A stretch of 57,424 nucleotides of DNA, the filler included, from Platydemus manokwari (taxonomy: Eukaryota), in assembly GCA_037951405.1 (NCBI GenBank). It is 6 parts of 6 records of this genome, joined end to end, with 100 filler letters (N's around TTAATTAATTAA, not from the genome) between each part and the next. Parts side by side here need not be neighbours in the genome. Positions count along the whole stretch, not along the records: positions 37,954 to 47,657 come from JBBMOY011214767.1; 5 more parts are not named here. One strand, 5' to 3'. A model generated the notes under the pieces. It was not told where the DNA came from, ran no database searches, and saw only the letters and a program-made list of their open reading frames with translations. Below are positions 6,501 through 47,657 of the stretch, piece by piece (position 1 is the first letter of the stretch; every line of letters begins with the position of its first letter). The translations under genes and the position numbers were made by a program.

Positions 6501-8204
6501 TCCAAAGATTAGAAATAACGATGAAACAAATTGTGAGGATTTTAAAATTTTTGTAAGCTAATAAGAATTTAAAATTAATTTTTCTCAGCTTAAATAATAA
6601 ATAAATAAAGGAATTTAAATAATTTGTTTGAATATTCTGGATTAATGTATTTTGTGGGTTGACTTTCTTGGGTTTGTTTTTGATTAAATAGTCTTTTTTC
6701 GCATGGGTTATGAGAAAATTAATTATAGAAAAGTATAGGAAAACCAAAAAAATATGAAAATATAAAGAAGATAGAGTATATATGGAACACGGGGAATATA
6801 TTTTGTTGGGTGCAAGACCCCAACCCAGATAGTAATAATAATCAACACAAATTTTGTTTAAGGAAAATTTAAAAATAGAATCAGATCATAATAACTCATA
6901 AAAATAAATTAAATAAAATAAAAAAGTAGAAATATAATTAAATAAAGAAAAGATAAAAAAGTATAAATAAGAAGCCTATTATTAGAATGGACAAGTTATT
7001 ATAATACGCTTATTACTACGACATTTTCAGAAAAGAACGTCATTACCGTCTAACTAACCAGTTTTGTTGCTTATTCTTTCATCTGTCGATGAGAACTTTG
7101 AATAATTCGCTCACTGCTCGATTTGAATCGGCAGCCATTCATAGAACTCTTTTATCACTTAGCTACGGTCCATGGTAGATGTTATTATTGGAATGAGCTT
7201 TCACATCGATACTCCATCACATTTTGAAGAGATCATATTAAATGAACTATCAAATAAGAAATCACTATGACAACATGGCGGTAAGTTGTAAGTAGAAAGA
7301 ATTCACAAGGAATATCAATTGCTATAAAATATTTCTATGAGAAATAATATTGCAGCCAGTTAAAAAAATAGTTAATTAAATAAAAATTCCATCGCCAAAT
7401 AGCACAACATGAAAAATTGTCGAAGTTCAATAAATTCTTTCAATACAAAAATCATTCTCACAATTATAAAAATGAACTTTTTTTCAAATATTTGGCATTT
7501 ATTTACAAATCTTATAATTCCATTTTATACCACTAATTCCAGATATGAGAAAGAATTGATAAATGGAATTATTTAAATTTATTTTTCTGGAAACGAGTAA
7601 TTTATGGATTTATTTAGTGGAAAAATTTTAATTTCATAAAACCCGTGTTGGTGTCGAACGAATGATTCTATTTTATGAGTTTTGCTTTCTGTATATCTAT
7701 ACAATCGATCAATAATGCTTGTCCTTGTTATTTCCAACGGAATATTTTTTTATGGAATAAAAAATATATCCACAAAAATAATAGGGGAAAAAAAACGACT
7801 TTTCGTTTTAAAAAACAAATCCTCTTTTGACGTGATTCAAATTCAACAAATCTAATTTTATTTTTTTCAATTTTACATAATTTATGATGGCGTTGGGACT
7901 CGATAAGAAAGTGGTTATTAACATATCATCACCAAAGTGACATCGTCAAGTAATATTTTCAACTGTCATTTGATAAAAACATCTCCAATGTGATGCATAA
8001 TTAATTTATTTCCCCTCAACTAATCAAAACTCAATAATTGGGAGCTATTTGCATACTCTAATGTTACACTTATGTAAATTTATAGAATCCATTTCTAGCC
8101 AGACAATTATTCCCAAAGAGGAAGTTATTTTAATAAAATTGATTTAGGGATTAATAATTGCGTTCCTTAATCAAATTGTTCGTGTGGATTTTGTTTGTTA
8201 CTGA

Positions 8205-37953: not shown

Positions 37954-38027
37954 TGGGCGGCATGTCGTCTTCTGTTGCTCGGATGCGATCTGCGAAGGCA
38001 AAAAAGCATACAAATTGTGATTAGGCG

Positions 38028-38094
38028 CCGTCCGTCCGTCCGATTGAAGCCATTGCCCTCGTTCAACCTGCTTGATCCAGCATTGGTTATATTT
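38028..38094 (-). repeat. Left-arm terminal module (38-nt hairpin block plus CAATC(GGAC)n)
   Basis: The reverse complement of 38057-38094 is identical to 47530-47567. The reverse complement of 38028-38046 is identical to 47590-47608. Confidence 0.95.
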
Positions 38095-40225
38095 GAGGGC
38101 ATGGATGATGCTTATTTCCTGTTCTTGTGTCTTTGGTGTCGCTTGCTCTATCCTTCCGTCGGCAGCAAAGGAGATTTTGGCTGTCTTCTTTTATGGGGTT
38201 GATTTCTAGTGGTGTTTCGGTGTGTTTTTCCTTGTCCTCTGGGGCGTTTGTGATCCAGTCCTGTCCAGGACTTTTTTTTCCAGGTTGCGCCGATTTTCCC
38301 GGCTGTTTGGTTTCTTTCCCGGCGAAGACGCGCTCAGCTTTTTCGAGGATCGCAGCGTAGGACGCTTTTTCTTCATTTTGCTCCGCTATGAGGCGTCTTG
38401 CTTCTGTGAGTTCCGCTAGGGCCCTCTGGAAATCCGCGGCTACCTTCGGATTTATTTCTGTTTCCTCCTCCGTGCTCGTGTTCTCTGCTGAGGCCTCTTC
38501 TTCTGATGTGGTGTCTTCTGTTTGGGTTTTGTGGATAATGTCTTTCTGCTTCTCGATGATCTGTCTTTCCTCTTTGATTGATGTTAGCAGCGTCTCGGTC
38601 GTCTCCTTGATCTTGTTCATTCTGGCGACCTCCTTTTTGATATTTTGTAGGATTGACTCATGCTCTCCTTTATCTTGGTCTTGTTTCCTCATGAGGGCTT
38701 CTTTTGCTTCCAGCAGTAGTCTTATTTCCTCCTTCAGTGCTTGTCTTTCTCCACGTATTCCTTTGAGGATTGCCTCGTTTTCCGTCTTAACTTGTGTCAG
38801 CTTGGCGACTTCTTGCTGGACCTGGATTTGCGCTGCTAATATTTCCTGCAGCATTTTTTCGGTGTCTTCGCTGTTGTCTTGTCTTGAGGCGTTCTCCTTG
38901 TCTGTTACTTTCTCTGTCATCCTTTCTAGCTGCTCCTTGAGGTCCTTGACTTCCTTTTGTAGTGCAGTTTTTTCCGTCTGGGTGATGCCCCAGGCTGCCT
39001 CTGTCCTGCTCCGAGCTTCTTTGAATGGTATATTTTCCATGGTGGATAGCTTGAGCGTTTCTTTGCACTGTTGCAGGTAGGGGCAGCCCAGGTATCGGGC
39101 TCCGTGGGCTCCCAGGCAGTTGGCGCACTTCCGGTTGGTGTTGGCCTTCCGGTAGTCCTCATCTTTCTTGGCCAGTGGGCAGTCGTTGTAGCTGTGGGCC
39201 TCGGCGCAGTACCTGCAGACTTCCGGTCCACGACAGCTGGGTCTTGTGTGTCCTGCTTTAAGGCATCTGGAGCACTGTATTACTCTCGGGATGAGTCGCT
39301 CCGGCTGTTGTTGTCTTCTGTAGAAGTTGATCTTGTCTGGGATTTCACATCCCTCTGTTGAGATGATGGCCACCGTCGTCGGGGTGTTATTTCTGGTGGT
39401 GATTCTCTCTGCAGTCTTGAAGACGAGGTGCGGGTTGTCTTTTTGGAGTTGTTTCTTGATATCGTCGTTGCTGAGTTGCGTGGGGATCCTCTTGATCACC
39501 CACCTCCTCTCCTCTACGAAGCTTGTGATCTCGATCTCCGTGTCGTCGTCCAGCTGCAGTATTTTGCCGCTTTTGGCGACTTGGGCCAGCAGGATTCTGG
39601 TCGTCTGCATCTTGTTAATGAAAGCGACGATTCCATCCCGAGTCTTTCGAAGGCTGGCGATGGTTCTCTTGCCTGTCGTTGTTTCGATGAGCGAGATGAT
39701 TTTATCTCTTGTCATTGCCGCTAGCAGGTTGGTGTCTTTGTTGATTTGCCGGATGGCAACTTTGGTGACTTCCTTCTGCCCTGCTTCAGCTGTGGCTTCT
39801 GGTTGAGGTCTGGCTTGAGACTTGTCAGCTGCTGTCCCTCTGCCGGCCGCTGACTTCTCTGGTGATTTGCTCTTTCGCCCTGATAAGGGCGCTGTGGTTA
39901 TATTTTTTGCCCTGAGAAGGGCAGTGGGTGGTTCTGTTTTTGCCCTGAGAAGGGCATTGGGCGATTCTGCATCAGAACCTTGTGGCGGTGTCCCAGGAGA
40001 CTCACTGCTCTCTGGGGCGGGAGTTTCCGCTGGTCGCCCTGATAAGGGCGTCGTGGTTATATTTTCTGCCCTGATAAGGGCAGTGGGCGGTTCGATGTCC
40101 GAACCATTAGAAGGTTGGTTTGGCGGCCCGCTTGAAGCTGGGCTGCAAGCGGTCGCTGGCTTGCTTGTGGCTTGAGTCCCCCTCGTCGCCGCCGGCCGTT
40201 TTCCTTTTCCTCTTGACTTGGACAT
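38087..40225 (-). CDS. Gag-like ORF1 paralog (three CCHC knuckles, long coiled coil); frame open to 40396, likely start MSKSRGKGKR at 40225 (712 aa)
   Basis: VIQCSRCLKAGHTRPSC...CRYCAEAHSYNDC...CANCLGAHGARYLGC is preceded by an RRM-like VIKRIP...AERI region. No pol frame follows. The ATG at 40396 lies upstream of the minus-strand TATA box (40348-40354), so the 40225 start is preferred. Confidence 0.88.
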   Translation of the reverse strand: MSKSRGKGKRPAATRGTQATSKPATACSPASSGPPNQPSNGSDIEPPTALIRAENITTTPLSGRPAETPAPESSESPGTPPQGSDAESPNALLRAKTEPPTALLRAKNITTAPLSGRKSKSPEKSAAGRGTAADKSQARPQPEATAEAGQKEVTKVAIRQINKDTNLLAAMTRDKIISLIETTTGKRTIASLRKTRDGIVAFINKMQTTRILLAQVAKSGKILQLDDDTEIEITSFVEERRWVIKRIPTQLSNDDIKKQLQKDNPHLVFKTAERITTRNNTPTTVAIISTEGCEIPDKINFYRRQQQPERLIPRVIQCSRCLKAGHTRPSCRGPEVCRYCAEAHSYNDCPLAKKDEDYRKANTNRKCANCLGAHGARYLGCPYLQQCKETLKLSTMENIPFKEARSRTEAAWGITQTEKTALQKEVKDLKEQLERMTEKVTDKENASRQDNSEDTEKMLQEILAAQIQVQQEVAKLTQVKTENEAILKGIRGERQALKEEIRLLLEAKEALMRKQDQDKGEHESILQNIKKEVARMNKIKETTETLLTSIKEERQIIEKQKDIIHKTQTEDTTSEEEASAENTSTEEETEINPKVAADFQRALAELTEARRLIAEQNEEKASYAAILEKAERVFAGKETKQPGKSAQPGKKSPGQDWITNAPEDKEKHTETPLEINPIKEDSQNLLCCRRKDRASDTKDTRTGNKHHPCPQI
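39876..40082 (-). repeat. Five 16-nt hairpins YGCCCT-TMTC-AGGGCR
   Basis: Copies at 39876-39891, 39908-39923, 39941-39956, 40035-40050 and 40067-40082. The outer pair covaries between C-G and T-A. Confidence 0.92.
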
Positions 40226-40347
40226 ATTTTCCGGTATTGTGCAATCGTGGCTGGCTGCCAATGGTGTAGCACGTCTGTCTCCGCTGAGCGCTGAGAAGCA
40301 CTGTGTGTGTGATTGAGGATGTCTCAGAATCGCCGCCGATATCGGAG

Positions 40348-40469
40348 TTTTATACCTCGGCGACGAGGAAGACGAAACGGGCGGTTGCGACTGCATGCGT
40401 GTTTCTAGCGATTTGATTGGTTGTGCCGAATTCGTCCTTTTCCTCGTCCTTTCCGAGCTCGTATATAAA
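40348..40469. promoter_or_regulatory. Putative mirror-symmetric bidirectional Pol II promoter
   Basis: TATAAAA on minus (40348-40354), TATATAAA on plus (40462-40469), ATTGG (CCAAT box) at 40416-40420. Inverted sub-motifs: CTCGG/CCGAG, GACGAGGAA/TTCCTCGTC, GACGAA/TTCGTC. Confidence 0.7.
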
Positions 40470-40931
40470 GCCGGTAAAGGTGCCGTTTTTTTACAACTAC
40501 ATCAGACATCGTGCTTTGCATCCCATGTGCTTGGCAGCGTTTACCCATTCAAGGGGCCCTGAAATATTCAGACGGATTGTGTTTGCTTCTTGCTGGATCT
40601 TACTTTGATGTGTACTTTGTGGCGGATTTTGTGACTTCAGTGATGTTTCAGTGAATTTCGAGTGCGGCGAGCGAAGCGGAGCGGTTCGTAAGTAGGCAAT
40701 AATTCAATATATACTTTAAACCTAGGTAAAATAACTAGCCATAGCCTTAGCCTTAGCACTAACTAAATAGACAATCTGTAACTGCTAACATAAATAACAT
40801 CGCTAACTATTAAATAATTAAACAAGATAAATATATAAAACAGGAATAACTAGTCAAGAAGCTAATTAGGTAATCATAGCTTAAAAGCAAAACTTATTAA
40901 CTACTCAAAGACAAGATTAGCAACGGTAACC

Positions 40932-42563
40932 ATGCCCCCCACTACTAGAGGCAAATCTGTGGAGAAAGTTGCACCAGCAAAAAGTCAGGAAAGGACAAAC
41001 GGTGTGGCTAAACAACCCAGACCGCGGACGGTGAAGCCCATCCCCGAACTTCCGGAGGAAGTCCGGCAGGAAAAAGTAAAAGAACAGAGGGACAAAAGAA
41101 CGGAAGGACTACTGATCCGCGTGACACAATTGGAAGGAGGGGAGTGCCGCCTAACATCAATAGGTAAAAAGGCGGCAATCAATGTACTGGAAGGCGGACT
41201 CGGGACTCGAGCGATAAGAATCATCTCATTCAACCCAGATAAATCGATGACAATAACACCTAACAGAGGCTCGCCAGTAGATAAAATTATAGACAAAATA
41301 GTAAAACAGGACGGACCAGAAACCATGGACCTCCAAACACATGGAATCAGGATTAAACTTGAACTCGTTCCTCCAACATCAAAGTTCGTGATAAAAGGAA
41401 TAAACCCGACGACGAAAATAGACAAGATCCAAGAGGAATTAACAGCTGAAAACCCGAAGGTGAAGTTCGTCAATGTTGAAAGGCTGTATGGAAGCAACGG
41501 CATAACCACGTCGATAATAGTCGCAGTATGTGAGAGCGCAGATACTCCACACAGTATAAGATACATGGGGAGGGAGAAATACACTGAAAATTTCATTCCC
41601 CCCGTAATCCAATGCGCCAAATGCAACAAATTTGGACACACGAAAAACGTATGTCGGGCAACCCACCCGACTTGCAAATTTTGCAGCGGACAACACTGGC
41701 ACGGGGACTGCCGCTATGCGAAGGAAGATAAAGACTATAAGCTGAAAAACAAAAATAGGAGGTGCTCCAATTGCCAAGGGAACCACGGAGCCAGATTTGG
41801 CGGATGCCCGGCCCTCAAGCTGACAAAACTGGCCTGGAGAGAAGCCAACCTAACCAACACATCAATGCGGATCACCAAGTGGAGACAAGAAAACACGAAA
41901 AATCTACCGGAAACACAATCAGAAGTAAGAATCATTCAGGCCGAGATGGCAAACATAAAGAATAAGCTAAGTAGCGAACATCCAACAGACGCAAAAAGGG
42001 ACCAAAACAAAAACGGGAGAGAAAACCCTGCAACCCCTAACTCGGAACAAACGAAAGAAATAGTAACACAATGGAAAGCAACAGCAACGGAAATAGCAAA
42101 AGTGAAAAAAGACACAAAGTCAACAGAAGAAAGACTTACTAAGCTAAATAAGAACATAGAAGAAGCAGCCAACAGAATGGAGCAGGCTAAAAAGGAGATG
42201 ATGGATATGAAAGCAGATATCACAATAATGATTGAAGAAGGGAAAAAAGAACTCAAGCAGCTAGCCGACAATATAAAAAACGATTTGGCAGCCAAAGACC
42301 AAGCCACACAGGAGGCACTAGGAGGAAACTCGAATTGGCAAAACGAAGTTGCTCAAACCTTGAGAGGAATCAAGGAAAGACTCAACCAACAGGCGGCAGA
42401 GCTCAGAGAGACAAAAAGAGAAACAGCAGGTATGATACAAGAAGCAGTGGCGTTCGCCACGGGCAGGAGAGCCAACCCAGCATGGAAAGTGGCGGAGGAG
42501 GAAGAAGAAACAACTGAGGAGAGCAGCACAGCAACAGAGGATACAGAGGGAGAAGAAAACTAA
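40932..42563 (+). CDS. LINE ORF1, gag-like nucleic-acid-binding protein (three CCHC knuckles plus coiled coil)
   Basis: VIQCAKCNKFGHTKNVC...CKFCSGQHWHGDC...CSNCQGNHGARFGGC. It lies 41 nt upstream of ORF2. Confidence 0.93.
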   Translation: MPPTTRGKSVEKVAPAKSQERTNGVAKQPRPRTVKPIPELPEEVRQEKVKEQRDKRTEGLLIRVTQLEGGECRLTSIGKKAAINVLEGGLGTRAIRIISFNPDKSMTITPNRGSPVDKIIDKIVKQDGPETMDLQTHGIRIKLELVPPTSKFVIKGINPTTKIDKIQEELTAENPKVKFVNVERLYGSNGITTSIIVAVCESADTPHSIRYMGREKYTENFIPPVIQCAKCNKFGHTKNVCRATHPTCKFCSGQHWHGDCRYAKEDKDYKLKNKNRRCSNCQGNHGARFGGCPALKLTKLAWREANLTNTSMRITKWRQENTKNLPETQSEVRIIQAEMANIKNKLSSEHPTDAKRDQNKNGRENPATPNSEQTKEIVTQWKATATEIAKVKKDTKSTEERLTKLNKNIEEAANRMEQAKKEMMDMKADITIMIEEGKKELKQLADNIKNDLAAKDQATQEALGGNSNWQNEVAQTLRGIKERLNQQAAELRETKRETAGMIQEAVAFATGRRANPAWKVAEEEEETTEESSTATEDTEGEEN

Positions 42564-42604
42564 AGACCACAAGAAAGCAAGTTAAATCGCCGAGGAAACC
42601 AACA

Positions 42605-45600
42605 ATGGCAAGAGAAAACATAACTTTAGCGCAGTGGAACTGCCGAGGTATTGAGGGAAACCTCCCCAGCATGAGACAACTACTGGGAAATGACGTGGAC
42701 GTCCTAGTACTCCAAGAAACCCATCTAAAGCAATCACAAAAATATAGAAGCCGAGGATTCACCGCTATCAGAAGGGACAGACCGAACAGAGAAGGAGGGG
42801 GGGTAATGATACTAGTCAGGGAAAAACTCCAGATCATCAATCAAGAAAGCTTTGGAACAACCAACATGGAGGGTGTCAGTGCGGAAATAGCTGGGAACCC
42901 AAGGAACGTAACAATAATTAACATTTACTGCCCGGTAGGTAGAATAGAAGAGGAAGACATAAGGGAACTACAGGACAGATTGAAGACTACTACCATAATA
43001 ATGGGGGATTTTAACTGCCACCACCCAGTGTGGGGCTCTAGAAGAAGCAGCGCAGGAGGCAGAAGACTATTGGAATTTATTGAAACCAACCAGCTAACAA
43101 TCCTTAATGATGGGTCCATCACAAGAGTAGATCCTCGGCCGACCAAAAGTGACTCATCAGTAGATATTACGATAGTGACAGAGGACCTAGCAGGAAGTCT
43201 ATGGGAAATAGGTGAGGACACTACCAGCGACCACCTCCCAATCATAGTCAGGACCACCACCAAACCCAGGAAAAACAAAGACAGCACTAGGCCCACATTC
43301 ACGTACAAAAACGCCAACTGGACCAGCTTCATAGAAGAGCTAGAAAGAATAGACCTTAGGAGGAGAGATCAGGAAGAACTAGAGTCATATGTGGACAGAT
43401 TCACAGTAAGTATTTTAAAAGCTGCTACCAAGCACATACCAAATAGAAACATGCCTGAAAACATCAGAAGGGCAGCACGACCAACCACACATGGAGGACA
43501 CAGAAACAACCCAACAAACCGTGAAACAGAGGAGGGTAGTCCGCCCACACAAAAAGACAACAACACACCAAGAAACAAGAATCCAGTAATATGGTGGAAT
43601 AATAATTGTACACTGGCGGTACGAAACAGGAAAAAAGCGCTACAGAAATACAGAAGACAGCGCACAGAAGAAAACTATGAAGAATACAAAGAATACAGAA
43701 ATTCAGCCAACAAAACAATCAAAAAAGCCAAGGAGACCGAATGGAGAACCTATTGCCAGAAGATCAACCCTGACACACCAGTAAGCGATGTCTGGAAGCA
43801 GATTAAAACAATAAAAGGCAGCAACAGGACGAGTAACATCCCCACAATAAAACAACCTACAATGGCAATCACGGATAAGGAAAAAGCGAGTGCATTTGCA
43901 GAACACTTCCATAAAGTTTTCTCCAATGAAAGGACCGGAGTGCAAGAACTAGAGAGAAGGAAGAAATTCTTAGAGGAAGCAGAGGAGGAACCACAGGCGG
44001 ATATTGAGGACTACTATATGGATACGGACCTAACTGTGGATGAAGTGACAGCAGCAATAAGGGAAAAATCAGATACGGCAGCAGGAGCTGATATCCTCAG
44101 CTACACGATTTTAAAAAAGGTACCAGCAAAAATAATAGGAACATTGACAGAGCTGTATAACACCATCTGGAGGACAGGAAACATCCCAAAACAATGGAAA
44201 ACGGCAATAATAGTGCCCATACGAAAAGAAAACAAAGAAGGCCACAAAGTAGACTCATATAGACCCATAGCGCTAACATCTCACATAGGAAAAATCATGG
44301 AAACGGTAGTAAATAAAAGAATAAAATTCCACATGGAGAAAAACGACATATACAGCACGACCCAATCAGGCTTCAGAAGTCAGCGAAACACCATGGACCA
44401 AGTCATAAAACTAGAGAACGACGTCAAGAAAGGTTTCAAGAAAGGAGAAAAGACTATAGCAGTCTTCCTGGACCTAGAACAGGCCTATGACCAGTGCTGG
44501 CGGGAAGCAGCACTCCTTAAACTAAATAGAATAGGAATAGTGGGAAGAACATTCAAATACGTAGCAAGCTTCCTCCAGGATAGGACTTTCAAAGTCAGAA
44601 TTAGAAATGAGGAGTCACAGACCTTATGCCAGGAAAACGGAATACCCCAGGGCTCAGTCATCTCCCCAACAATCTTTACAATATTAGTAAACGACCTAAA
44701 TGAAGTGATAGAAGATGAGAAAACGGGCCTCTCACAATTTGCGGATGACTGTGCCGTATGGAGAAGCGGGAAAGATGTAAAGTTCACCAGGATCAAACTG
44801 CAAGGACAACTCCAACACATCGCGCGCTGGATGGAAAAATGGGGTTTCAAAATTAACACGGAAAAGACAGTCAGCATGGTTTTCAGCAGGAAGAGAAAGA
44901 AAGAGTATATGGACATCAAGATAAAGATCCAAGAGAAGAAAATAAAAAGAGTAGCCAGCACCCGCTTCCTAGGAATGATCCTGGACGACAAACTGACCTG
45001 GAAGCCACATATCGATAAAGTAGTAGAAAAGGGCAAGAGAGCCCTCAATATTCTCCGAGTCATCAAAGGGAGCGGATGGGGAGCCCATACGTCAACAATG
45101 ATAACACTGTACAAGGCACTGATTCGAGGAAAAATTGAGTACGGAAGCATAGTATACGATGCAGCCCAAGAAGGCACGAAGAAGAAATTAGACACCATCC
45201 AAAATATGGCAATGAGAACAATCCTAGGAGCAGGTAAGTGTACGTCGAAGGAAGCCATGGAAGTCGCCCTAGGTCTAACACCGCTCAACATAAGAAGGAA
45301 ACAGCTAACGTATAACTACTGGACCCGGGTAGCACAGGATGAGAACCACCCGGCATTTTCGACATTCACAGAAAATAGGAGCAAATGGGGAGGAATACCG
45401 ATCTTTAAATTACAGAGACCAGCAGGATGGGATGCGGCGGAAGAAATGAAAAAATCAAAAGAACTGGCTAATACAATCCTGGAAATTAAAACACGAAGAC
45501 AAACAGTTCCACCCTGGGAGTGCAAACTACCAATAACAGATAGCAGCCTGGCCACGAGAATATCTAAGAACACAGGAGACCTGGAGGCCAAGTGCATCAC

Positions 45601-46465
45601 CGAGGAATATATAGAAGAAATTAGACGAGACAACCTAATAATATACACAGATGGATCCAAAAATAACCAGGGGCAAGTAGGAGCAGGGATAGTCGTCCCA
45701 CACTGGAACATCTGCAAATCCTTTAAGCTGACAGACCATGCCTCAGTATTCACAGCCGAACTCATAGGGATCCTCAAGGCAATCGAAACAGCGACGGAGA
45801 ACCCACCAAACAAACTAAGCATACTGACAGACTCACTGGCGGCAGTTCACGCACTAGGAAACTTTACAAGAGGAACAAGACCGGACATAAAGGAGGAAAT
45901 CATAACCAAAACCACACACCTTAGAAACTTGGGATGCCAAATCAGCATAGGTTGGATACCGGCGCACAGGGACATCGCGGGAAATGAGAAGGCAGACAGA
46001 GCAGCCAAAGCAGGTATATACAGTAAAGACCAAATCCAAACCGGCCTGGGAAAAACTGAAGGGAAAAGCATCATCAAAACCTACGTGCAAAAGAAGTGGC
46101 GGGAACAATGGAAGGACAGCCCGAGGGGACGACTGGCGCACCAACACCTGAATGAGCCAACATTTAGACCCCAAGTCAAGGAACTAATGAAAATTCCCAC
46201 TAACCAGAAGATGTGGAGACTGCGACTGGGATACTGGAAGGATCGATACGTCAGCCCACTATGCATGCAGTGCCTGGAGACCAACACAATAGATCACTTC
46301 ATGATAACCTGCAGCAACTTCACAGAAGAGCGGAAAGACCTGACAGATTATTTCACAAACATGAACAAGGTAATGACGACCAAAGAATGCCTACATATAA
46401 ACAGCGACAAAGAAATACAAAGATTAGTCAAACAGTACATCAACCGAACAGGAAAGGACATATAG
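42605..46465 (+). CDS. LINE ORF2: APE endonuclease, reverse transcriptase, RNase H, CCHC (I group, e.g. I/Nimb/Loa-like)
   Basis: APE: QWNCRG, LQET, GDFNCH, SDHLPI. RT: YRPIALTS, QSGFR, FLDLEQAYD, GIPQGSVISP, FADD. RNase H: IYTDGS, TAEL, TDS, WIPAH..GNEKAD. C-terminal CMQC..H....C. Uninterrupted 1286 aa. Confidence 0.97.
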   Translation: MARENITLAQWNCRGIEGNLPSMRQLLGNDVDVLVLQETHLKQSQKYRSRGFTAIRRDRPNREGGGVMILVREKLQIINQESFGTTNMEGVSAEIAGNPRNVTIINIYCPVGRIEEEDIRELQDRLKTTTIIMGDFNCHHPVWGSRRSSAGGRRLLEFIETNQLTILNDGSITRVDPRPTKSDSSVDITIVTEDLAGSLWEIGEDTTSDHLPIIVRTTTKPRKNKDSTRPTFTYKNANWTSFIEELERIDLRRRDQEELESYVDRFTVSILKAATKHIPNRNMPENIRRAARPTTHGGHRNNPTNRETEEGSPPTQKDNNTPRNKNPVIWWNNNCTLAVRNRKKALQKYRRQRTEENYEEYKEYRNSANKTIKKAKETEWRTYCQKINPDTPVSDVWKQIKTIKGSNRTSNIPTIKQPTMAITDKEKASAFAEHFHKVFSNERTGVQELERRKKFLEEAEEEPQADIEDYYMDTDLTVDEVTAAIREKSDTAAGADILSYTILKKVPAKIIGTLTELYNTIWRTGNIPKQWKTAIIVPIRKENKEGHKVDSYRPIALTSHIGKIMETVVNKRIKFHMEKNDIYSTTQSGFRSQRNTMDQVIKLENDVKKGFKKGEKTIAVFLDLEQAYDQCWREAALLKLNRIGIVGRTFKYVASFLQDRTFKVRIRNEESQTLCQENGIPQGSVISPTIFTILVNDLNEVIEDEKTGLSQFADDCAVWRSGKDVKFTRIKLQGQLQHIARWMEKWGFKINTEKTVSMVFSRKRKKEYMDIKIKIQEKKIKRVASTRFLGMILDDKLTWKPHIDKVVEKGKRALNILRVIKGSGWGAHTSTMITLYKALIRGKIEYGSIVYDAAQEGTKKKLDTIQNMAMRTILGAGKCTSKEAMEVALGLTPLNIRRKQLTYNYWTRVAQDENHPAFSTFTENRSKWGGIPIFKLQRPAGWDAAEEMKKSKELANTILEIKTRRQTVPPWECKLPITDSSLATRISKNTGDLEAKCITEEYIEEIRRDNLIIYTDGSKNNQGQVGAGIVVPHWNICKSFKLTDHASVFTAELIGILKAIETATENPPNKLSILTDSLAAVHALGNFTRGTRPDIKEEIITKTTHLRNLGCQISIGWIPAHRDIAGNEKADRAAKAGIYSKDQIQTGLGKTEGKSIIKTYVQKKWREQWKDSPRGRLAHQHLNEPTFRPQVKELMKIPTNQKMWRLRLGYWKDRYVSPLCMQCLETNTIDHFMITCSNFTEERKDLTDYFTNMNKVMTTKECLHINSDKEIQRLVKQYINRTGKDI

Positions 46466-47529
46466 AAGTAGGGCACAAGTAAAACAGAAAGGATTAGGTC
46501 AAGTAACGAACCACAGCAAGACAACCTGGCCAGCAAAGAAGTAGAGGACGGTAAGTAACCCCCAAGACGGTGGAACCTAGAAACAGAGAGAGGATCTCCC
46601 AGGTGGAACGAGACCCAGACAGAGAAGAAAAGATGACGAGGTCCCCAAACCGAGGAGAGCTAGAGATGGAGCCAACAGCAACTCAAGTACAAGAGAACCA
46701 ACAGAGGGTGCAAACATGGCTACCAAAAACCAAAGAGGGATAAAACAAATAACCTAAACAACGAATAGCCAAATAGACTAAAGGATTAAAAATAACACTC
46801 AAAATAACTAAGCAAGTAGAAAATCTAAGGAAACGAACAAATAAGTAAACAAACAGTAAACAGTAACAATAAGATAAAAGCCCAGCAAAAGATAGACAAA
46901 TATAAGTAACAAAAATCAAAACCAGGAAAGACCTAGCACTAAAGTAGAACTCAGACTATAAAAGCTAAAATACTAAAAAGTCTATGACAAATAACCTAAA
47001 GCAATGAAAATTACAATCGCGAAATAAGTAAATTTCAAAGAATACAACCTAAAGAACAATATAAAGTACAAAGGCTTACCAAAACGGCCACAGTAAAACA
47101 TAGCAAATTATACTAGAACCTAAAAATAGGCGAAAGGCGGTCTAGCAGGGCACCCGAACAATCTCCCCAGCGACGATCAATGGGGAGCAAACCTCAAGGC
47201 GGCCCTGCGGGATAAAAAAACATAAAAAGCAAACAAAAATTTAAAAAAATAAACCAACTAACGAACTAAAAAAGAGTAACAATAGGCGAAAACAACGAGC
47301 AAAACCGCATAAAGACCGCAAACAAGGAACCGAAGAGAACTCTCGACCTGTCCACAGTGCTGCGAAAGGCCTGGAAGCTACCTCTGGCAAACTGGCAGCT
47401 GCAACCCGGGAGGCACGACGTCTGCTGCAAGGAAGCGATCGACCGAAGCGTGAAGAAACAACAAACGTAGCAACACAGTCAACTCATCAACAAAAGAATG
47501 AAGAAGATAACGCCCTAAAAATACGCCTT

Positions 47530-47612
47530 AAATATAACCAATGCTGGATCAAGCAGGTTGAACGAGGCGGAATTTTTCTTTTTTTTTCCCAATCGGACGG
47601 ACGGACGGACGG
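47530..47612 (+). repeat. Right-arm terminal module (38-nt hairpin block plus CAATC(GGAC)n)
   Basis: AAATATAACCAATGCTGGATCAAGCAGGTTGAACGAGG, then a T-rich spacer, then CAATCGGACGGACGGACGGACGG. Confidence 0.95.
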
Positions 47613-47657
47613 GCCGTTTTTTTAGCTCCCAAGCGGATCACACACACAGTGCTTCTC

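Follow-up and report, generated by a model that had tools for sequence, protein, structure and literature searches.

A gag-only unit and an intact LINE of I-group architecture share a 3′ hairpin and tail in Platydemus manokwari

Two LINE units in divergent orientation

We analyzed positions 37954 to 47657 (record JBBMOY011214767.1; 9,704 bases, no N) of a 57,424-nucleotide stretch of DNA (the window, along which all positions are counted) made of six joined parts of the Platydemus manokwari genome assembly GCA_037951405.1. Two long interspersed nuclear element (LINE) units lie there head to head, namely, a minus-strand unit, here termed A, whose only gene is a gag-like first open reading frame (ORF1), and a plus-strand LINE, here termed B, with both gag and polymerase (pol) genes. 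Beyond B stands the beginning of a second A-type 5′ end, A′ (Table 1). A and B terminate in the same 3′ hairpin and tetranucleotide tail, and B is enclosed by a target-site duplication of its own.

B is a complete autonomous LINE. In Pfam searches its ORF2 product matched an endonuclease (residues 9 to 214; Exo_endo_phos_2, E = 1.7e-24; Exo_endo_phos, E = 4.2e-17), for which the TRAS1 endonuclease is a PDB match, then a reverse transcriptase (RT; RVT_1, E = 5.8e-39) with an intact FADD motif at residue 712 and, after it, an RNase H (RNase_H, E = 1.5e-16; residues 1010 to 1138). ORF1 contains three intact CCHC knuckles, and its predicted architecture comprises two RRM-like domains, the knuckles, and a coiled coil, the RRM fold being modelled on the homologous core of A. 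RNase H downstream of RT has been reported for the I-group clades (PMC4640811). Since an endonuclease-RT-RNase H pol and a knuckle-bearing ORF1, as in the I-group LINEs I, Nimb/Nimbus, and Ingi, fit that group, we assign B an apparent I-group architecture, a group-level call made by domain content. Because both ORFs and the FADD motif are intact, B is a young copy; the sequence-only reading, an earlier description of this DNA made without database searches, had rightly seen in the plus arm an intact gag-plus-pol LINE. The closest database pol, 43% identical, lies on L001 (1-13566), a metagenome contig with two full-length LINE copies in tandem. The 5′ untranslated region (UTR) of B shifts from G/T rich to A rich at a GTAAGT (40688-40693), and L001 carries GTGAGT right before its ORF1 start (about 6557-6562); both could be splice-donor-like sites in the 5′ UTRs.

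The gag core of A was modelled with AlphaFold at a pLDDT of 90.7, with the knuckles preceded by two RRM-like domains, and the Foldseek matches of the model are tandem-RRM proteins. Neither the A nor the B ORF1 protein has a Pfam match; the RRM-like model, taken together with the knuckles, suggests that both are ordinary RNA-binding proteins of the LINE ORF1 type. No pol remnant was detected in A at E < 0.6 by tblastn with four pol proteins, so pol is confined to the plus arm, as had been noticed from the sequence. The N-terminal repeats of A (39873-39969 and 40034-40093) encode PPTAL(I/L)RA(E/K)NITT.PLSGR in a disordered region, and this 11-amino-acid (aa) repeat has no counterpart in the B ORF1. 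At its other end, the A ORF runs about 120 codons beyond the acidic tract where the B ORF1 ends (38090-38460) and stops within the 3′ hairpin block; this C-terminal extension has no match in B or in the related loci.

Table 1. Features of the A/B locus, in coordinates of the window
Feature	Position	Strand	Basis or remark
Unit A, gag-only, about 2.29 kb, no pol	38028..40313	-	putative 5′ limit, from 21-nt identity with 47637-47657
A leader, 88 nt, starting ATCACACACACAGTG	from 40313	-	
A ORF, whole open frame, 769 aa	40396..38087	-	
A ORF from likely real start MSKSRGK, 712 aa	ATG 40225 to stop 38087	-	
A gag core, two RRM-like domains then three CCHC knuckles	38957..39796	-	AlphaFold, Foldseek, homologues
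A N-terminal 33-nt (11-aa) repeats	39873..40093	-	
A ORF stop codon, inside shared block	38089-38087	-	
A 3′ hairpin	38050..38104	-	fold; consensus structure
Shared 42-nt block in A	38098-38057	-	
A tail, AATC(GGAC)3GG	38028..38045	-	
Older spacer, A to second A-type 5′ end	40314..40493	.	192 nt with 47625-47636 added
TATAAAA in spacer	40354-40348	-	
CCAAT box in spacer, A's side	40420-40416	-	
TATATAAA (plus-strand TATA) in spacer	40462-40469	+	
5′ target-site duplication copy, GCCGTTTTTTTA, 12 bp	40482..40493	+	438 nt upstream of B ORF1
Element B, complete autonomous LINE, 7,119 bp	40494..47612	+	ORFs, Pfam domains, knuckles; boundaries from target-site duplication
B 5′ UTR	40494-40931	+	
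B ORF1, 543 aa	40932-42563	+	
B ORF1-ORF2 gap, 41 nt	between 42563 and 42605	+	
B ORF2, 1286 aa	42605-46465	+	
B 3′ UTR	46466-47612	+	
B 3′ hairpin	47520..47574	+	fold; consensus structure
Shared 42-nt block in B	47526-47567	+	
B tail, AATC(GGAC)4GG	47591..47612	+	
3′ target-site duplication copy, GCCGTTTTTTTA	47613..47624	+	directly after (GGAC)4GG tail
A′, first 21 nt of second A-type 5′ leader	47637..47657	+	cut by piece end

Relationships of the gag proteins

The two ORF1 proteins are homologous and well diverged (29% identity over 303 aa; E = 3e-40), and both have the same three knuckle types, CX2CX4HX4C, CX2CX3HX4C, and CX2CX3HX6C. To this extent the initial description of two diverged, divergently oriented ORF1 genes with a common knuckle spacing holds. 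It had also singled out a linker, AK.D.DY..N.NR.C, as an unusual feature common to both proteins. The linker is indeed present in both, but it recurs in the ORF1 of L001, which is followed by its own pol, and is therefore a family trait rather than a special bond between A and B. As DNA, A and B cannot be aligned outside their last ~85 nt. Shared 5′ modules were considered and dropped, the similarity of the 5′ ends not being significant.

For comparison we used the nearest LINE relatives found (L001 to L010). The L001 ORF1 (753 aa) is about equally distant from A (31% identity; E = 8e-54) and from B (30 to 31%). In the gag tree, A and B fall within a 12-member clade (SH-aLRT support, 97) without being sisters. 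The companions of A there are four decayed fragments on short read-assembly contigs; the pol-followed gags of L001 and L004 make up another subclade. The non-sister placement points to an origin of the 5′ part of A in a lineage different from that of B. Judged by the dissimilar 5′ ends, the 29% gag identity, and the tree, this part of A was not derived from B, and any progenitor of A would belong to a different lineage from B. The closest relatives of the A gag (L003, L006, L007, and L008 to L010) are 36 to 43% identical, come from short read-assembly contigs, and lack several knuckle cysteines, as decayed copies in some other organism. The contigs that carry these nearest relatives are ~1 kb long and uninformative on the sequence downstream of gag.

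A HMMER search of a representative protein library with the A gag core recovered 3798 homologues at E ≤ 0.001, the best of them 43% identical. Exact-protein look-ups had neither the A ORF nor the B ORF2 on record, a word-index search with the whole A ORF gave zero matches, and metagenome scans with the 26-nt hairpin core and with the A gag core found nothing; none of these look-ups and scans brought up further sequence of the source genome. Rfam and tRNA scans of the region were likewise empty, and therefore no small-RNA gene is indicated as target; a bacterial promoter/terminator scan is uninformative for a eukaryotic element.

A common 3′ hairpin with compensatory changes

The identical end blocks reported for the two arms were borne out: the block matches at 41 of 42 positions and is followed in each arm by AATC(GGAC)n, block and tail together aligning over 83 columns (81% identity; E = 4e-16). 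The 3′ ends of A and B adopt a common hairpin fold. A two-sequence consensus fold has 18 pairs, 5 of them compensatory; these five lie in the stem outside the identical block, with both sides changed and still paired. By our estimate, random changes would leave five such pairs compensated in about 0.7% of cases (0.375^5). The compensatory pairs argue that the hairpin has been under structural selection in both the A and the B lineages, and that A did not recently acquire its hairpin from this B. Neither hairpin nor (GGAC)n tail was found in L001 to L010. At the 5′ arm of the B hairpin, a 13-nt tandem duplication, ACGCC(C/T)TAAA(A/T)AT, repeats that arm (47510-47536).

A shared hairpin could be inherited as well as borrowed. 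On such an account, an unseen autonomous LINE of A type, with a pol of its own, would have passed on its hairpin to A, which would have arisen from it by internal deletion as a one-off or minor derivative. A would be independent of B, the two being mere neighbors. Several observations suit it: the more distant gag homologues with enough context precede pol (L001 and L004), and the L004 ORF downstream of gag matches the B endonuclease at 40%; the A and B gags are not sisters; the compensatory changes mean a long separate evolution of the A hairpin; and the run of the A ORF past the acidic tract into the hairpin is what a deletion that fused frames could have left. Yet no pol fragment of any kind is left in A, and A and B have identical hairpin loops and inner stems despite the gag divergence. 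Moreover, L001, with its pol 43% identical to that of B, and like relatives are without the hairpin, and the intact 712- to 769-codon ORF and knuckles suggest that A is maintained or young. We regard descent of this kind as unlikely, though less so than the other alternatives.

B as an independent insertion into an older locus

The two copies of GCCGTTTTTTTA at the ends of B match at 12 of 12 positions. They are the only two occurrences in the region, and no other direct 12-mer repeat of the region sits at an element boundary; shuffles of the B 3′ flank matched the upstream region equally well in 3 of 3000 cases. A perfect 12-bp repeat at both the 5′ boundary and the (GGAC)n tail marks B as a single independent insertion, and B is thus a discrete, ordinary LINE insertion beside A.

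The sequence past B supports this independently. The 3′ copy of the duplication is followed by 12 nt, GCTCCCAAGCGG, and then by ATCACACACACAGTGCTTCTC (47637-47657), which is the exact reverse complement (21/21) of 40293-40313 in the A leader. Once B and one copy of the duplication are deleted, 192 nt separate A from a second A-type 5′ end that faces it, and the target before insertion reads ...GGTGCCGTTTTTTTAGCTCCCAAGCGG... across the site. In this restored spacer each arm is preceded by a TATAAA(A), 41 nt upstream for A and 42 nt upstream for A′, with a CCAAT box 66 nt upstream of the TATA of A. Its halves are weakly but significantly alike when one is inverted (the local score was reached by 4 of 1000 shuffles and the global score by 2 of 1000), with the common motifs TTCGTC..TTCCTCGTC..CCGAG..GTATA(T)AAA. 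That removal of B restores the symmetry is independent support for the target-site duplication, and since an A-type 5′ end follows the 3′ copy, the element that the plus-strand TATA faced before the insertion was A′ and not B.

These results bear directly on the proposal of the sequence-only reading that A and B form one organized two-component or giant element. Such a composite would have one bidirectional promoter for both arms and terminal modules in inverted orientation, and would move or function as a unit. The divergent arms, the TATA motifs on both strands between them, and the inverted identical 3′ modules are what such a unit would display, and the first base of B (40494) follows the older locus's plus-strand TATAAA (40464) at a distance of exactly 30 nt. 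The perfect duplication of B, however, falls inside the proposed unit. The search for target duplications and termini delimited B completely and found no shared duplication in the outer flanks (left of 38028 and right of 47612). The second A-type 5′ end beyond B, toward which the plus-strand TATA was first directed, and the 5′ ends of A and B, which are not significantly similar, weigh further against a composite, and the proposal is contradicted to the point of being highly improbable. What survives of the shared promoter is a TATA-bearing region between the arms, from which B is set apart by its own duplication. The 30-nt spacing is probably chance, though it may have given B a captured promoter for its transcription.

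A head-to-head arrangement may also have other causes. Repeat-rich DNA is prone to misassembly, and the junction could be a chimeric join of repeats; but the two junctions of B, separated by 7.1 kb, have matching 12-bp duplications, and the site is symmetric once B is excised, which makes a random chimeric join unlikely, and we give an assembly artefact next to no credence. L1 twin-priming inversions yield head-to-head arms, both of them copies of one RNA, that have a single 3′ tail and are enclosed together by one duplication. Here, in contrast, the tails are separate, the gags are 29% identical, and B has its own duplication; with a hairpin and tail on each arm and arms that cannot be aligned as DNA, a twin-priming inversion was rejected.

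The symmetry of the older locus admits a different account of A itself. A and A′ might be a gene-like inverted gag pair with an external bidirectional RNA polymerase II (Pol II) promoter (CCAAT and TATA), produced by inverted duplication of a retrocopy at the DNA level and possibly domesticated, its LINE 3′ end being a relic. The likeness of the inverted spacer halves, the conserved spacing from TATA to each arm, the position of the CCAAT box, and the intact A ORF are all in keeping with it. A′, though, is seen over 21 nt alone, the compensatory upkeep of the hairpin suggests an ongoing RT recognition signal and not a relic, and the tail repeat of A is intact. We consider such a pair doubtful. 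We hold equally doubtful an intermediate version, in which the pair under B would be a LINE gag turned into a Pol II gene-like unit with external TATA and CCAAT boxes, or an inverted dimer from a single double-primed insertion, that kept a selected RT-recognition hairpin and whose mRNA could be retrotransposed by B.

Separate insertions and mobilization of A in trans

The reading that we prefer, with a probability of roughly 0.7, is that of separate insertions: a young, intact B came to lie next to A, an ORF1-only LINE whose RNA uses an RT that recognizes the shared hairpin. On present sequence evidence, A is best read as an ORF1-only, nonautonomous LINE of the HeT-A/HAL1/Ag-Sponge kind. In stringent-type LINEs, the ORF2 protein strictly recognizes the cognate 3′ stem-loop before target-primed reverse transcription (PMC4176376). 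The RNA of A would bear the loop, inner stem, and tail repeat of B, so an RT with the specificity of B should accept it. A would thereby be copied in trans by a hairpin-binding RT, from B or a close relative of B, supplying its own RNA-binding gag and borrowing the endonuclease and RT functions. B, in turn, would have entered GCCGTTTTTTTA by target-primed reverse transcription, duplicating 12 bp at a site that lay within the 192-nt spacer between A and the inverted A-type 5′ end. The earlier suggestion that the gag-only unit borrows its RT is thus plausible, since A lacks pol, ends in the 3′ hairpin and tail seen in B, and shows compensatory stem changes, and mobilization in trans is the step that we infer.

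Some observations weigh against this reading. The candidate target duplication of A, CCT(C)AATCACA (38025-38016 and 40318-40308), is weak (p about 0.06). A is visible as one complete copy plus 21 nt of a second. Its exact 5′ end is a putative one, and its membership in a multicopy family and its lack of a pol-bearing sibling are presumptive. The collections searched hold no close relative of A, the best being 43% identical and on short decayed contigs. A TATA and a CCAAT box upstream of its apparent 5′ end are unexpected for a retrotransposed LINE copy. Finally, an autonomous A-type ancestor could account for the shared hairpin with no dependence on B.

Comparison with known ORF1-only LINEs

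The head-to-head layout is an ordinary nesting of one transposon beside another and is not new in kind. It had been thought to have no described counterpart, but ORF1-bearing nonautonomous LINEs, and ORF1-only LINE partners as a category, are already known from HeT-A, HAL1, and Ag-Sponge (PMC5786205). HeT-A, which belongs with TART and TAHRE to the telomeric Jockey-clade elements of Drosophila, resembles A as a gag-only unit beside pol-encoding relatives, with RT provided in trans (presumptively so for A), and its gag likewise combines three CCHC knuckles with a variable repeat region. Unlike A, it is arrayed head to tail at telomeres, has a poly(A) end, and drives its downstream neighbor from a 3′ promoter; A and B have a hairpin and a (GGAC)n tail, an inverted orientation, no evidence of a telomeric site, and a pol with RNase H (I group, not Jockey). 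Loss of ORF2 recurs across lineages (PMC5786205, PMC13534243); it is reported to be common among the telomeric elements of Drosophila and seemingly missing from nontelomeric Jockey elements (PMC13534243).

HAL1 (half-L1) and Ag-Sponge (CR1 clade), which are mobilized by an autonomous partner (PMC5786205), consist like A of an ORF1 and a LINE 3′ end with no ORF2. They are internal-deletion derivatives whose 5′ part matches the partner, whereas the A gag is 29% identical to that of B and not its sister, with ~85 nt shared at the 3′ end. A parallel for the 3′ ends is the stringent-type tail sharing of zebrafish ZfL2-1 and ZfL2-2, where, as in A and B, a conserved 3′ stem-loop precedes short tandem repeats, these together being what the cognate ORF2 protein recognizes (PMC4176376). 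In such tail sharing between LINEs and short interspersed nuclear elements (SINEs), a nonautonomous RNA gains mobility through the stem-loop; by analogy, A may be recognized in the same way. A differs from the SINE passengers by encoding a full gag rather than being a short RNA polymerase III-transcribed SINE, and the clade concerned is the I group and not L2.

Significance

Good documentation of ORF1-only LINEs comes chiefly from Drosophila telomeres (HeT-A and relatives), mammals (HAL1), and mosquitoes (Ag-Sponge), and a case outside the Drosophila telomeric setting has some value. A is probably a new LINE partner of the gag-only kind, in a lineage whose pol has RNase H, and is linked to its partner by a hairpin and a tetranucleotide tail. 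If so, it would add one more independent case, here from an I-group lineage with RNase H and with a co-varying 3′ hairpin instead of poly(A) as the tie to the partner, and it would offer a clean system for studying the contribution of a second gag and the stringency with which an I-group ORF2 protein reads its tail.

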